From: Octopus sinensis
Taxonomy: Eukaryota
DNA: 64,000 bases
NCBI RefSeq assembly: GCF_006345805.1
Contig: NC_043020.1
Location: 2,108,001-2,172,000, forward strand
Reading direction: 5' to 3'
Each line of letters begins with the position of its first letter. Positions within the stretch are counted from its first letter, which is position 1. Below, one piece after another: positions 10,629-40,236 of the stretch. Under the pieces are notes generated by a model, which had not been told where the DNA came from, ran no database searches, and saw only the letters and a program-made list of their open reading frames with translations. A program made the translations under genes and the position numbers.

Positions 10629-11537
10629 TCATCCACCAGATCTGTTCACACTCTTGCAACCGCATGACGGCTGCAGGCACTGGTTCTCAGTCAAGTACAT
10701 ATCGATGGTACTTCTTTTCTTGTTCGTGGACTTAAAAGGAGGCTTAAAAGAATTCCTTAAAACAAGCTCAACTGGAAAAGGATAAGGAATTTTGCGAGTA
10801 CGGTTAACTTCCTTCGCCATTTCCCAACAAGAAAGCGCAACAGCCATGTGTATACTTCTATTTTCTTCAGCGATATCGAATGCAGATTTGCCATCGTAAT
10901 TCTTGGTATAAGGGTTTAAGCCTTCCTCAATCAACAACTTGGTGACGTTTAAGTTCTGATTCCTGACAGCATAATGAAGAGCCGTATTACCATTAACATC
11001 TCTTAAATGTAACGTGTGTTTGCTCAGCTTTAGCAGTTCCTTTGTTATATCTAAATTAAATACAGCCAACATTAGCGGTGTTTCACCGAGTTCGCTACAG
11101 ATATTAACATTGGCGTTATTGGCCAAAAGGAAGTCAGCCATTTTAACATCCCTTTCTGCCAGACATCTCATCAGCGCTGTTGAACCCCACCAACCCTTTG
11201 AATTTATATCTGCTCCGAATTGTAAAAGACAGTAAGCTGCTTCATAACTTTTTGTCCATATAGCCGCCCAAAATGGTGTTATAAATATTATATTGTACAG
11301 AGCGCATTTTTGATCAACCGGGGCTTGGCATTCTTCAACGAGATACGATATAAGATCGACATTATTGGTTGTTGCAGCATGAAACATGGGTGTTACTCCA
11401 TTATAGAGTAACATTGTCAACATATTACGTTCCTCAAACGTGTAGTGCTCCAATTCGTCCATGATTCCTATCCAATCGTCATACTTTATGCACCCAGACA
11501 TATTCTTTATAGCGTCTTGGAGTCTCTCGCTGTTCAT
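10629..11537 (-). CDS. Fem-1-like ankyrin-repeat protein, paralogue 1 (about 302 aa, single coding exon, lacks the TPR/C-terminal half)
   Basis: Uninterrupted ORF with 5-6 ankyrin repeats (NGVTPMFHAA, TPFWAA, GSTALM, GETPLMLA, GNTALHYAV). NGVTPMFHAATTNNVDLISYLVEECQAPVD resembles the FEM1 N-terminal NGATPLLMAARYGHLDMVEFLLEQCSASIE. A 3' splice site ttttcacAG (11544-11543) lies 5 nt before ATG 11537, so the track's TTG start at 11627 is probably intronic. Confidence 0.85.
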   Translation of the reverse strand: MNSERLQDAIKNMSGCIKYDDWIGIMDELEHYTFEERNMLTMLLYNGVTPMFHAATTNNVDLISYLVEECQAPVDQKCALYNIIFITPFWAAIWTKSYEAAYCLLQFGADINSKGWWGSTALMRCLAERDVKMADFLLANNANVNICSELGETPLMLAVFNLDITKELLKLSKHTLHLRDVNGNTALHYAVRNQNLNVTKLLIEEGLNPYTKNYDGKSAFDIAEENRSIHMAVALSCWEMAKEVNRTRKIPYPFPVELVLRNSFKPPFKSTNKKRSTIDMYLTENQCLQPSCGCKSVNRSGG

Positions 11538-11580
11538 TCTCCCTGTGAAAATACAAACCAACAAAATGTAAAATAATTCG

Positions 11581-12065
11581 TTTTTAACTGTGGAACTCGA
11601 AGTAGATAAAGCTACAAAGAATAGCATGTAAAAATTGGGTTAAAAGTCTTTTGGATAGTAAAAGTGAAAAGCTGCCCATGGGAGACGAATCCATATATTC
11701 TATAAATATGACAGATGTTCCACTATTGAATCAAAGTAACCCTTCGAATTTCTCTGTTCATTTCAGGAGTTTTGTTCTTACCAGTTAAGACATATAAGCT
11801 GTTTGCGTCATAAGAATTTACAAACATCGAGAAACGTGAATGATACGTTTTTAACGGTGGAACTCGAAGTAGATCAAGCTACAAATAATAGTGTATAATA
11901 CTGCGTTACAGGAAGAAACTTTTGGATAGATAATGTCGCCCCTGGCACTCCAACTTACATTTCCTGTGCACATGGACCAAAACAATTTTTCGAATTTTCC
12001 TATCTATGGAACTCGAAGTGGATAAAGCTATAAATAATAGAATGTAAATATTGAATTCTAAAACC
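11581..12065 (+). repeat. Three degenerate tandem copies of a locus-associated repeat (tggaactcgaagtagataaagctacaaa.aatag.atgtaa)
   Basis: Copies start near 11591, 11858 and 12007. Further copies lie at about 18395-18512 and 38087-38190. Confidence 0.7.
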
Positions 12066-13339
12066 TCTAAATTCTAATGATGTAAACAACAAAATGTAAT
12101 TCTAGTGTTTTCTAAGACACAAAGTTGCTTTGGAAATATGTGGTTAAAATGAAAAGCAATAAACAAGCACACACAAACACACACACACACCACACCACAT
12201 ACACACACACACACACACACGCACACACACTCACACACACACACACACACATATATATGTATACGGCGGGTTTCTTTCAGTTTCCGTTTACCAAATCCAC
12301 TCACAAGCCTTTGGTCGACCCGGAACCGTGTGGTTGGGAAACAAGCTTCTTAGCACAAAGCCACGCTCGCGCCTATAAGTGTGTGTGTGCGCGCGCGCGT
12401 ATGGTATATATATTTATATATATGTGGTGTGTATATATATATGTATATATATATAATATATATATATATATATATATATATATATATATATATATATATA
12501 TAGTAGTAGTGTGTACGTATTAATAAATCTCTCTGTCTGTCTCTCTCCGTATATATATATATGTATATATATGTGTGTATATAACACATATATTATACTA
12601 CATATATCTTATATATATAGAGAGAATATAGTATACATATACTTATGTATATATATATACATATATATATATATATGCACACATATATTTAGTCTGTATA
12701 GATACAGAGGAAACAGCGACGAAAGAGAGAGAGAGATAAAGACTTATGATAATACATATATACACGACAGATCACTCACGCACTCATACACCAATATGCA
12801 TATGTATACACACATACCAACACACATATACATATACATATTATATATATATATTATCTTATATTATATTATATGTATATATATATTGTTCGAGTGGAAG
12901 AACAAGTTGAAAAGAATTTATGTCTGACTGCTTAAAGTACATTGAAATAAGAATCTTAGAGTGAATAAAAAAACATTTCATCCATAATCGTTAGTTCCAA
13001 AAAAAATATATTCTCTTTGTGGTTTATGGTTCATCAGAATTAATGACTAACATTCAAAATAAGAGTTTCCTGAACTTTTGGTTCTTTTCGTTCCCGATTA
13101 GCCAAAGGCAAAACAGAAAATATATTTTACTGGACAAACAATTAGGGATTGAATATGTTTTATATTCATATCGATAGATAGGAGAGAGATACCTACATTC
13201 ACACACGCGTATATATGTATGCATGTATTTATGTATGCATGTATTTATGTATGCATGTGTATGTATATGTGTATATATATATATATATATATATACGCAT
13301 ATATATGTATGTACATGTGTGTGCGTGTTTGATTAACCT

Positions 13340-38190: not shown

Positions 38191-38542
38191 ATCGAAGGCT
38201 CTCTGAGAGACTCAAGTCTACATGTTCCCATAATGACAAGCGTTCTACCACCAGACAAAAGCAATCCTTTGATTGGCTCTCTTCAATTTAGAAACTTTAT
38301 TCTTACTATTCAGAATTGTATGTTGATATAGGATTTCATTATAGGGACAACTCTTCTGCCAAACGATCGTAAGATGCTTAAATAATTTATTCAAAACTTT
38401 TAAATTATCAAATTTATTTTATATATTATATTCATATTTTTACATTTATTTATATATATATTTAATACAATAAGTATTTTCACACGGGTATATCTTTATG
38501 ATGAGTTTGGATATTAATTTCCTTACATTAATAATAATACTC

Positions 38543-39005
38543 TTTACTCTTTTACTCTTTTACTTGTTTCAGTCATTTGACTGCGGCCATGCTGGAGCAC
38601 CGCCTTTAGTCGAGCAAATCGACCCCGGGACTTATTCTTTGTAAGCCCAGTACTTATTATATCGGTCTCTTTTGCCGAACCGCTAGGTGACGGGGACGTA
38701 AACACACCAGCATCGGTTGTCAAGCAATGCTAGGGGGACAAACACACATACACAAACACACACACATACACACACACACACACAATATATATATATCTAT
38801 TATATATATATATAATTTATATATATATATATACATATATACGACAGGCTTCTTTCAGTTTCCGTCTACCAAATCAACTCACAAGGCTTTGGTCGGCCCG
38901 GGGCTATAGCAGAAGACACTTACCCAAGATGCCACGCAGTGTGACTGAACCTGGAACCATGTGGTTGGTTAGCAAGCTACTTACCACACAGCCACTCCTG
39001 CGCCT
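38543..39005 (-). mobile_element. SINE family A, full length, young; about 300 bp upstream of the paralogue-2 acceptor
   Basis: Near-identical to 2084-2498. Confidence 0.9.
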
Positions 39006-39318
39006 ATATATATAAGGCGCATATATATATGCGCCTATATAATATATTATTAAAAAATGTATGTTGATAGTAAGAATATATTTTCTAAAATGGATAGTGA
39101 AGTTCAGAATATTCCTTTGGTCCAATGGTAAAGCGCATGTAACACTCATAACATTCTGTCAGGTCTTCCATACCATTTAATAACAGCTTGCCTTGTCTCC
39201 TCGCGACTTAAAAATTTTTATGACCGTGTAAGACGTGAAGATTCTATCAGATACCTTACATATATATTTGACTTTTTCTTTCTTTTTTTTCTTCATGCAG
39301 AGAAATTTTTCAACAAAA

Positions 39319-40236
39319 ATGGATATGCAGCGCCAAACCATAGAAAATATCGTTAAAAAATTGCACAGTTTTCTCTACGAAAACCATGACCTGCCCTTCA
39401 TGGTACTCCTGGACCGCTACGCTGCAGACGACCGGAGGTTACTCACTAGCGTTCGATACAACGGCGTCACACCATTGTTTTATGCTGCTATTACTAACAA
39501 TACCACCATAATCCAATACCTTATCACACACTGTAAGTGTCTAATCGACCAGAGGTGTTATTTCTACAACTCGGAACGGGTAACTCCTTTCTGGGCAGCG
39601 GTCGTCAAAGACAATTGCAAAGCAGCAAACATGCTCTTGGCCTTCGGTGCCAATATCAATGCCCGTGGGTGGTGGGGGTCAACAGCGTTGATTAAGGCCT
39701 TAGTAGAGAAGAATTTACAGATGGCTCGAATAATCTTGAGCTATGAAGCTAACATCGATGCTTGCACTAATGAAAGGAAAACAGCACTTATGGCTGCCAC
39801 GTTTGATATAGACTTCACTAAAGAACTGCTGTGCAGAAGTAAATACAGCTTACACCAACAAGATATATTCGGTAACACAGCTTTACACCACGCTGTTCAA
39901 AATAAGCATTTGGATGTAGCTTCGCTGCTTGTCAAATCCGGAATAAATCCATTGACACCCAACCACAAAGGTGTAGATTCCTTAACATTGGTCAAAGAAT
40001 GTCGAAAGAAATTAATGGGAGTGCCACCTGTCTGTCGGCGACTTCAATTCGCTTCTTTCGGCGAAAGAACAACTAACACTAGCCAATGCACTGACCTATA
40101 CTATTTTGATCCCGAGGAACATGACTGCCCTGACCGCGATGGTTGTGGAGACTGGGACTTTGTTGACAGTAACCCGTTGAAAGATCTTCAGGGTTTTGAC
40201 CATAATCAATTGCAGGCATCCTATTACCGGAAATAG
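39319..40236 (+). CDS. Fem-1-like ankyrin-repeat protein, paralogue 2 (about 305 aa, single coding exon, lacks the TPR/C-terminal half)
   Basis: Uninterrupted ORF with repeats NGVTPLFYAA, TPFWAA, GWWGSTALIKA, KTALMAA and GNTALHHAV, aligning gap-free to paralogue 1. A strong acceptor ttttttttcttcatgcAG ends at 39300, 18 nt before ATG 39319. Confidence 0.85.
   Translation: MDMQRQTIENIVKKLHSFLYENHDLPFMVLLDRYAADDRRLLTSVRYNGVTPLFYAAITNNTTIIQYLITHCKCLIDQRCYFYNSERVTPFWAAVVKDNCKAANMLLAFGANINARGWWGSTALIKALVEKNLQMARIILSYEANIDACTNERKTALMAATFDIDFTKELLCRSKYSLHQQDIFGNTALHHAVQNKHLDVASLLVKSGINPLTPNHKGVDSLTLVKECRKKLMGVPPVCRRLQFASFGERTTNTSQCTDLYYFDPEEHDCPDRDGCGDWDFVDSNPLKDLQGFDHNQLQASYYRK

Follow-up and report, generated by a model that had tools for sequence, protein, structure and literature searches.

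Proteins of the FEM1 type (Caenorhabditis elegans FEM-1 and vertebrate FEM1A, FEM1B and FEM1C) are substrate receptors of CUL2-Elongin B/C ligases and measure about 620-630 amino acids; FEM-1 acts in nematode sex determination. Two further ankyrin systems invite comparison. Gankyrin (PSMD10) is a small stand-alone protein of seven ankyrin repeats, about 226 amino acids long, and zDHHC17 (HIP14) is a membrane palmitoyltransferase whose seven-repeat ankyrin domain binds short linear peptides via a key Trp. Here we describe two genes with products of about 300 amino acids, designated ORF1 and ORF2 after their open reading frames (ORFs), in a 64-kb stretch of the Octopus sinensis genome (hereafter, the window, meaning the whole of the DNA analysed). 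The window spans approximately positions 2,108,001-2,172,000 of the 31.2-Mb chromosome CM016882.1 (GCA_006345805.1), with ORF1 about 2.12 Mb along it. We consider it fairly probable that both belong to an octopod-only family of functional stand-alone genes, each with a single coding exon for a FEM1-like ankyrin module and a short tail, and without the ligase-docking half of FEM1.

Two divergent genes and the octopod family

The original prediction of two intact ORFs of about 300 amino acids facing away from each other was borne out: the genes lie head to head, with 27,781 bp between their ATG codons. Their features are as follows.

10629-11627, minus strand: ORF1 open frame, 332 codons
10629..11537, minus strand: ORF1-type gene, single coding exon, 302 amino acids plus stop; likely start at Met31 of the frame
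10836..11537, minus strand: ORF1 N-terminal helices and ankyrin repeats (residues 1 to ~234), a FEM1-like fold as judged from Pfam Ank matches and the AlphaFold model (predicted local confidence, pLDDT, ~90)
10629..10835, minus strand: ORF1 tail, basic (12 Lys+Arg versus 5 Asp+Glu), a predicted long helix and then predicted disorder, ending QCLQPSCGCKS
11543..11580, minus strand: polypyrimidine tract and CAG (AG at 11544-11543) that precede the ATG of ORF1 by 5 nt; putative splice acceptor of an intron in the 5' untranslated region (UTR)
10508..10513, minus strand: ATTAAA, candidate polyadenylation signal 116 nt past the ORF1 stop, a distance that is the same in O. vulgaris
39235-40236, plus strand: ORF2 open frame, 333 codons
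39319..40236, plus strand: ORF2-type gene, single coding exon, 305 amino acids plus stop; likely start at Met29 of the frame
39319..40020, plus strand: ORF2 N-terminal helices and ankyrin repeats (residues 1-234), a FEM1-like fold as judged from Pfam Ank matches, the AlphaFold model and Foldseek
40021..40236, plus strand: ORF2 tail, acidic (13 Asp+Glu versus 7 Lys+Arg), predicted disordered, with CRRL, YYxDPxEH, WDxV and a C-terminal YYR[K/R/I]
39270..39300, plus strand: polypyrimidine tract and CAG (AG at 39299-39300) that precede the ATG of ORF2 by 18 nt; putative splice acceptor of a 5'-UTR intron
40276..40281, plus strand: ATTAAA, candidate polyadenylation signal 40 nt past the ORF2 stop

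The probability of a 302-codon open frame arising by chance is ~2e-10 at ~35% G+C; because only ~3e-5 such frames are expected per window, chance is excluded as the origin of ORF1 and ORF2. The 302-amino-acid ORF1 product matched exactly an NCBI protein on CM016882.1, and the O. sinensis ORF2 protein was not in the protein collection under any of the four start codons tried. By BLASTP the two proteins were identical at 102 of 246 positions (41%, E = 1e-71), with one 2-residue gap near the N-terminus. The best ungapped block of 172 amino acids contained exactly the 87 identities that had been counted by hand, and the motifs TPFWAA, GWWGSTAL and TKELL, which had been noted as common to both, fall at identical positions (117, 145 and 195). 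Past about residue 235 the post-ankyrin tails of ORF1 and ORF2 are unrelated, again as foreseen. Elsewhere in the 64-kb window, neither copies nor relics of the family were found.

Both ORFs are intact in O. vulgaris, where the frames are open back to the same starts as in O. sinensis, and both genes are present in O. bimaculoides (P0001, ORF1 type; P0324, ORF2 type). An ORF2 orthologue that is 84% identical was identified in a fourth, more distant octopus (P0049). The O. vulgaris genes are annotated from internal Met codons: ORF1 (P0048) as a 290-amino-acid 'protein fem-1 homolog A isoform X1', 12 codons short, and ORF2 (P0050) from a far later Met as a 201-amino-acid 'PSMD10-like' protein, with the full 305-codon frame open (L005 9689-10606).

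To call ORF1 and ORF2 a pair is an understatement, as they come from a clustered family that has six or more genes in Argonauta. Six intact family genes, each with one coding exon for 289-324 amino acids, occupy 26.9 kb of Argonauta hians BAAFZT010000149.1 (1,396,785-1,423,688; L003 and L004) in the order A(-), B(+), C(-), D(-), G(+), F(+), and a seventh Argonauta gene (P0211) came from another assembly. Gene calling had missed two of these genes (L004 3422-4342 and 6592-7461, both on the minus strand). A and B are inverted duplicates of each other and nearly identical, with 3 amino acid differences and a synonymous divergence (dS) of 0.036. Genes F and D (L004 3422-4342, minus, versus 10001-10930, plus) are identical at 148 of 150 positions in the C-terminal half and at 9/9 at the end, with only 32-66% identity over the first 150 residues, a pattern that points to recent gene conversion or to a chimeric inverted duplication.

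Octopus ORF2 clustered with Argonauta A, B and E (100% bootstrap). The clade joins Octopus and Argonauta genes, so the ORF1/ORF2 duplication is older than the split between these genera, which by our own estimate took place some 10^8 years ago. Octopus ORF1 and Argonauta C, D, F and G formed no resolved clade (1-58% bootstrap); the N-terminus of Argonauta C resembles that of ORF1 (MNSE[R/K]L).

When 1.84 billion representative proteins were searched exhaustively with HMMER, giant multi-repeat ankyrin proteins dominated the list, and the family was visible in it only at 235 bits or more; all single-stretch matches at or above this score were octopod. In a profile search, scores fell from 322 bits for octopod proteins to 167 bits for generic multi-repeat proteins. 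The word-indexed and profile searches were lossy (the ORF1 query missed ORF2-type proteins with which it shares 8-mers, and the profile missed its own member P0052), so that an absence of matches in them is weak evidence. These results agree with the proposed lineage-specific subfamily, found only in octopods, with the proviso that distant non-octopod relatives scoring below 235 bits could escape such searches. A literature search found no description of an octopod ankyrin-only family.

Comparison with FEM1 and other ankyrin proteins

Both proteins are members of the ankyrin-repeat superfamily, with Pfam matches above the gathering threshold to Ank_2 (88 and 84 bits) and Ank (85 and 76 bits), and also to Ank_3, Ank_4 and Ank_5. 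Human FEM1B and PSMD10 served as queries after being checked against solved-structure sequences (1428.5 bits over residues 1-627/627 and 499 bits over 1-226/226, respectively). AlphaFold2, the weights of which are older than the first FEM1 structures (2020), modelled the ankyrin domain confidently (residues 1 to ~234, pLDDT ~90) and the tails with low confidence. When the ORF2 model was compared with the PDB by Foldseek, ranks 1-25 were all FEM1B or FEM1C. For the ORF1 model, rank 1 was the N-terminal domain of FEM1C (6xkc_A), and FEM1 structures made up most of the top 30 and had the lowest root-mean-square deviations. These FEM1 matches had query template-modelling scores (TMq) of 0.57-0.64 over 203-249 columns.

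Alignment register also pointed to FEM1. FEM1C was the only solved protein to match the N-terminal 125 amino acids in one co-linear stretch, at 43-45 bits versus no more than 15 bits per stretch for generic repeats. A hidden Markov model (HMM) of the family found one in-register domain in FEM1B (26-230, 70 bits), and its match to PSMD10 (46 bits) was split and shifted by a repeat. With hhalign, family residues 23-228 paired in register with FEM1B residues 16-229, and taken together the alignments to FEM1B cover its residues 16-231, whereas generic ankyrin matches mostly started near residue 48. The linker between the second and third repeats is extended in both the family and FEM1B (38 versus 42 residues from TP to TP, against a canonical 33). 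In the repeat that comes next, both have a Trp in the TPLH slot, where it occurs in 1.0% of 2,604 generic repeats; matching later repeats carry Met and then His in both, and the TPLH His is kept at the fifth position only, in the family and FEM1B alike.

Some of these residues belong to the FEM1B C-degron pocket, which is formed by Tyr84, Trp93 (in the pocket wall), Ser122, Arg126 and Phe130 (PMC11053023). Among 10 family members, Trp93 was kept in all 10 and Tyr84 and Ser122 in 8 each; FEM1B Tyr163 was kept as Phe or Tyr and Phe193 as Tyr or His. In ORF1 numbering, the predicted pocket residues are Tyr81, Trp90, Trp116-Trp117, Phe160 and Tyr189. As had been reported, the KGH turn is absent, owing to a 2-residue deletion relative to the FEM1B sequence YKGH, and the GWWGS finger is specific to the family; in both respects the octopod proteins differ from FEM1.

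A possible, though distinctly less likely, alternative is that these are ordinary lineage-specific ankyrin proteins, generic interaction adaptors like gankyrin, IkB and the INK4 proteins, in which the resemblance to FEM1 reflects convergence or simply a generic stack of 6-7 repeats with an N-terminal cap. Several observations fit this alternative and weigh against a FEM1 affinity. The hhalign score to FEM1B (~121-122) is the same as the median over 315 generic ankyrin proteins (121.6), with PSMD10 at 119.9, and BLASTP favoured PSMD10 over FEM1B for three Argonauta members. Identity to FEM1B is only 20-25%, and the best single-domain HMM scores of giant ankyrin proteins reached 73 bits versus 66.6 for FEM1B. 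Pfam gave generic Ank families only. Foldseek margins were thin, with E-values within ~10-fold and TMq values of 0.62-0.64 versus 0.54-0.61 for DHHC17, EHMT1 and designed repeats, and the models of ORF1 and ORF2 were both built from one shallow alignment of 7 sequences. Within the pocket itself, FEM1B Arg126 and Phe130 were kept in none of the 10 members, and Tyr153 and the His185/Cys186 zinc site are also replaced.

Two lines of argument were set aside. HMM best-domain and hhalign scores do not serve as proof of FEM1 membership, as controls showed no separation from generic ankyrins or PSMD10, and a neighbour-joining tree with one sequence each of FEM1B and PSMD10 held too few sequences to test affinity. 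Automated names reflect the same ambiguity: ORF1 is 'fem-1 homolog A', ORF2 and the Argonauta genes are 'PSMD10-like' (names that favour the ordinary-ankyrin alternative), and others are 'uncharacterized' or 'hypothetical'. Such inconsistency between FEM1A and PSMD10-like names is expected, because the similarities to FEM1 and PSMD10 are a near-tie.

The following observations count against the ordinary-ankyrin alternative: FEM1 tops the fold search for both paralogues; the alignment to FEM1B is in register from about residue 23-30, while generics begin at about 48; and an insertion in the same linker is shared together with the rare Trp and the Tyr of the FEM1B pocket at the same repeat. Gankyrin, which equals FEM1B in hhalign score (co-linear over 194 columns), differs in its canonical TPLH histidines, its regular 33-residue spacing and its lack of a tail, and it did not appear among the top 50 Foldseek matches of either model even though it is in the structure library. 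The zDHHC17 ankyrin domain was among the next-best fold matches (TMq 0.54-0.59), with a structural score below that of FEM1, and showed no specific sequence signature in the comparisons made here.

The proposed FEM1 membership fared unevenly: among solved structures, FEM1B and FEM1C come nearest to both proteins, but sequence scores to FEM1 are no better than those to PSMD10 or generic ankyrins, and of the sequence comparisons only the in-register HMM match as one domain favours FEM1B. On the evidence of the models, 'FEM1-like' correctly names the closest known structure, not a demonstrated membership. We lean slightly towards derivation of the family from a FEM1-type ancestor.

Gene boundaries, selection and surroundings

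The expectation that these proteins stop where FEM1 continues was upheld, as the ankyrin domain is followed by a tail of 60-90 residues that is predicted to be disordered. Full-length FEM1B used in tblastn matched only through its residues 23-228, on ORF1 and ORF2. FEM1B residues 260-627, which comprise TPR1-5, ANK8-10 and the VHL box, had no match in the window, which extends 10.6 kb past ORF1 and 24 kb past ORF2, nor in loci of 20 kb from O. vulgaris and Argonauta, in which further family members follow within a few kb. The canonical BC box, (S/T/A/P)LxxxCxxx(A/I/L/V), was not matched by eye in any family tail. Because the family proteins differ from FEM1 in having no TPR, ANK8-10 or VHL box, they should be unable on their own to dock Elongin B/C-CUL2. 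Thus, of the earlier suggestion that they may bind FEM1 substrates but cannot recruit the CUL2-based ligase (CRL2), the second part is in keeping with the absence of the ligase-docking half; binding of FEM1 substrates would have to do without the carboxylate-reading Arg126/Phe130 pair, which is replaced in all members.

ORF1 and ORF2 are real genes under purifying selection. Between O. sinensis and O. vulgaris, ORF1 is 98.2% and ORF2 97.3% identical without indels, whereas identity in the flanks is 87-95% and indels there are numerous. Ratios of non-synonymous to synonymous divergence (dN/dS), obtained pairwise by Nei-Gojobori counting, were 0.057 for ORF1 and 0.098 for ORF2 in this comparison. 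Against the fourth octopus, the ORF2 ratio was 0.197 (synonymous changes, 58.5; non-synonymous, 51.5; p = 5e-13 for the departure from neutrality); taken by part, it was 0.21 for the ankyrin region and 0.15 for the tail (p = 4e-6). No indels or stops interrupt the frames across four Octopus species and Argonauta. With dN/dS values of 0.06-0.20, and with the ORF2 lineage already apart from ORF1 before the Octopus-Argonauta split, the description of these genes as old duplicates kept by selection appears sound.

The limits of the genes are conserved as well. Each of the 11 family genes examined has a polypyrimidine tract and AG located 0-19 nt before its ATG, and the polypyrimidine-CAG upstream of ORF2 is kept in O. 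vulgaris and a further octopus; from these sequences we infer a conserved splice acceptor and hence a non-coding 5' exon in family genes. At the other end, ATTAAA follows the ORF2 stop by 41 nt in O. vulgaris and 36 nt in the further octopus. The position of the ORF2-type stop and the C-terminal YYR[K/R/I] are kept from Octopus to Argonauta, and the ORF1 stop codon is the same in O. vulgaris and O. bimaculoides. Logan contigs carrying the ORF2 orthologue (L006 and L007) were considered as transcripts and rejected as assembly fragments, since their ends lie in a dispersed repeat and in a CAT microsatellite.

Tails differ between the subfamilies and are conserved within each. In the ORF1 type the tail motif is ICxxCxxL in Argonauta ([I/L]xxIC[x2]C[P/K]xL) versus QCLQPSCGCKS in Octopus, found at 10629-10700 of the window (minus strand), at L003 15523-15600 (minus strand) and at the C-termini of D, F and G in L004. 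This Cys motif loosely recalls the start of the FEM1 VHL box, which in FEM1C we take to be LQCLAAR, but it does not fit the BC-box consensus.

These observations bear on whether the ORFs could be the first, or only visible, exons of full-length FEM1-type genes that splice to distant TPR, ankyrin and VHL-box exons. Cephalopod introns can be very long, and the window holds only the downstream distances given above. However, NCBI annotates ORF1 as a contiguous 302-amino-acid coding sequence, and the ATTAAA 36-41 nt past the ORF2 stop is conserved in three species. Taken together, the conserved stops (with YYR[K/R/I] in the ORF2 type), the constraint on the ORF2 tail in the same frame, and the absence of homology to FEM1 260-627 from the window and the related 20-kb loci make such splicing very unlikely. 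Decaying, non-functional duplicates with frames open by chance, an idea to which the missing O. sinensis ORF2 protein and its truncated O. vulgaris annotation might lend colour, are effectively refuted by the dN/dS values, the uninterrupted frames and the better conservation of the ORFs than of their flanks.

The rest of the window is AT-rich (27-45% G+C), with many microsatellites and dispersed repeats, and Rfam and tRNA scans of it gave no matches. Its other features are listed below.

41684-41783: assembly gap of 100 N, 1.4 kb downstream of ORF2, with long microsatellite arrays on both sides
2084-2491, 27040-27437, 30729-30957, 38545-39011 and 49236-49647, both orientations: dispersed repeat of ~400 nt resembling a short interspersed element (SINE), copies 72-96% identical
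18698-18911 and 50234-50447: partial copies of the SINE-like repeat
24874-25455, minus strand: ORF of 193 amino acids weakly similar to the endonuclease-reverse transcriptase domain Exo_endo_phos_2 (E = 1.5e-4, short of the gathering score)
22645-23273: 184-nt unit present in tandem in at least 3 copies, 98-99% identical
21987-22424, minus strand: Asp-rich ORF of 145 amino acids near the 184-nt array, no Pfam match
4.1-6.7, 13.5, 15.0-15.5, 17.5-18.1, 31.4, 35.0, 37.5-38.1, 41.0-42.8 and 56.7-58.6 kb: microsatellite arrays with 8-12-nt period (TA/CA-type)

One copy of the SINE-like repeat ends ~300 nt upstream of the ORF2 start, and the 5' 50 nt of the repeat also terminate Logan contigs of another octopus species. 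Judging by its sequence, the ORF at 24874-25455 is probably a fragment of a long interspersed element in an intergenic region. A G+C-richer stretch with negative GC skew at 22-24 kb adjoins the 184-nt array. Of the long spurious ORFs, most (poly 'YIYI', 'LSIY' and 'CMYV') stem from the microsatellite arrays, which also make the local GC skew strong at 4-8 kb and 54-58 kb.

Proposed function and implications

We propose that each family member is a small gene whose coding sequence lies in one exon, probably with a non-coding 5' exon in front of it. Its product would consist of N-terminal capping helices and some 6-7 ankyrin repeats, closest to the degron-binding ANK1-7 of FEM1B and FEM1C, followed by the disordered tail of 60-90 residues. 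As the models suggest, such a protein may act as a stand-alone adaptor, holding a partner protein or peptide on the concave face of the ankyrin stack in a pocket lined by aromatic residues, to which most members would add the family-specific Trp-Trp finger (GWWGS). Since the Arg126/Phe130 pair that reads the free C-terminus is lost, the specificity of the pocket should differ from that of FEM1. The tail could offer another point of interaction or a site for regulation.

A bolder version, which by analogy with FEM1 we put forward as unlikely, would make these proteins 'headless' FEM1 receptors that bind FEM1-type or related degrons without ubiquitylation, shielding CRL2-FEM1 clients or redirecting them, with the ORF2 tail as a pseudo-degron. 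The conserved ...YYR[K/R] end of the ORF2 type might then be an Arg/Lys-end pseudo-degron that auto-inhibits the pocket or makes the protein a FEM1 client. Given the part that FEM-1 plays in nematode sex determination and a male-biased Fem1 transcript in the O. sinensis gonad, headless receptors could, on this unlikely view, influence proteostasis in the octopod germline or in one sex.

Nothing, however, supports a link of the ORF1/ORF2 locus to sex determination. A male-biased Fem1 transcript has been described in the O. sinensis gonad under an in-house gene identifier only, and is not linked to this locus (PMC11202624). Linkage to the Z chromosome was also considered and set aside. PMC10925132 describes the Z of O. 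sinensis as large and 'formerly chr20', whereas CM016882.1 is small (31 Mb); the locus is probably autosomal.

For annotation, the consequence is that the inconsistent names of one family can be corrected and unified, with the warning that the 'fem-1' label of ORF1 is a poor marker of sex determination for octopus transcriptome studies. ORF1, ORF2 and their relatives form an ankyrin-only family that is lineage-restricted as far as the searches reach. If the FEM1 link is true, octopods would have retained ligase-free degron-receptor domains for ~10^8 years, a natural experiment on how decoys or competitors might regulate C-degron pathways, and the family would offer compact, well-folded ankyrin binders with an altered pocket.

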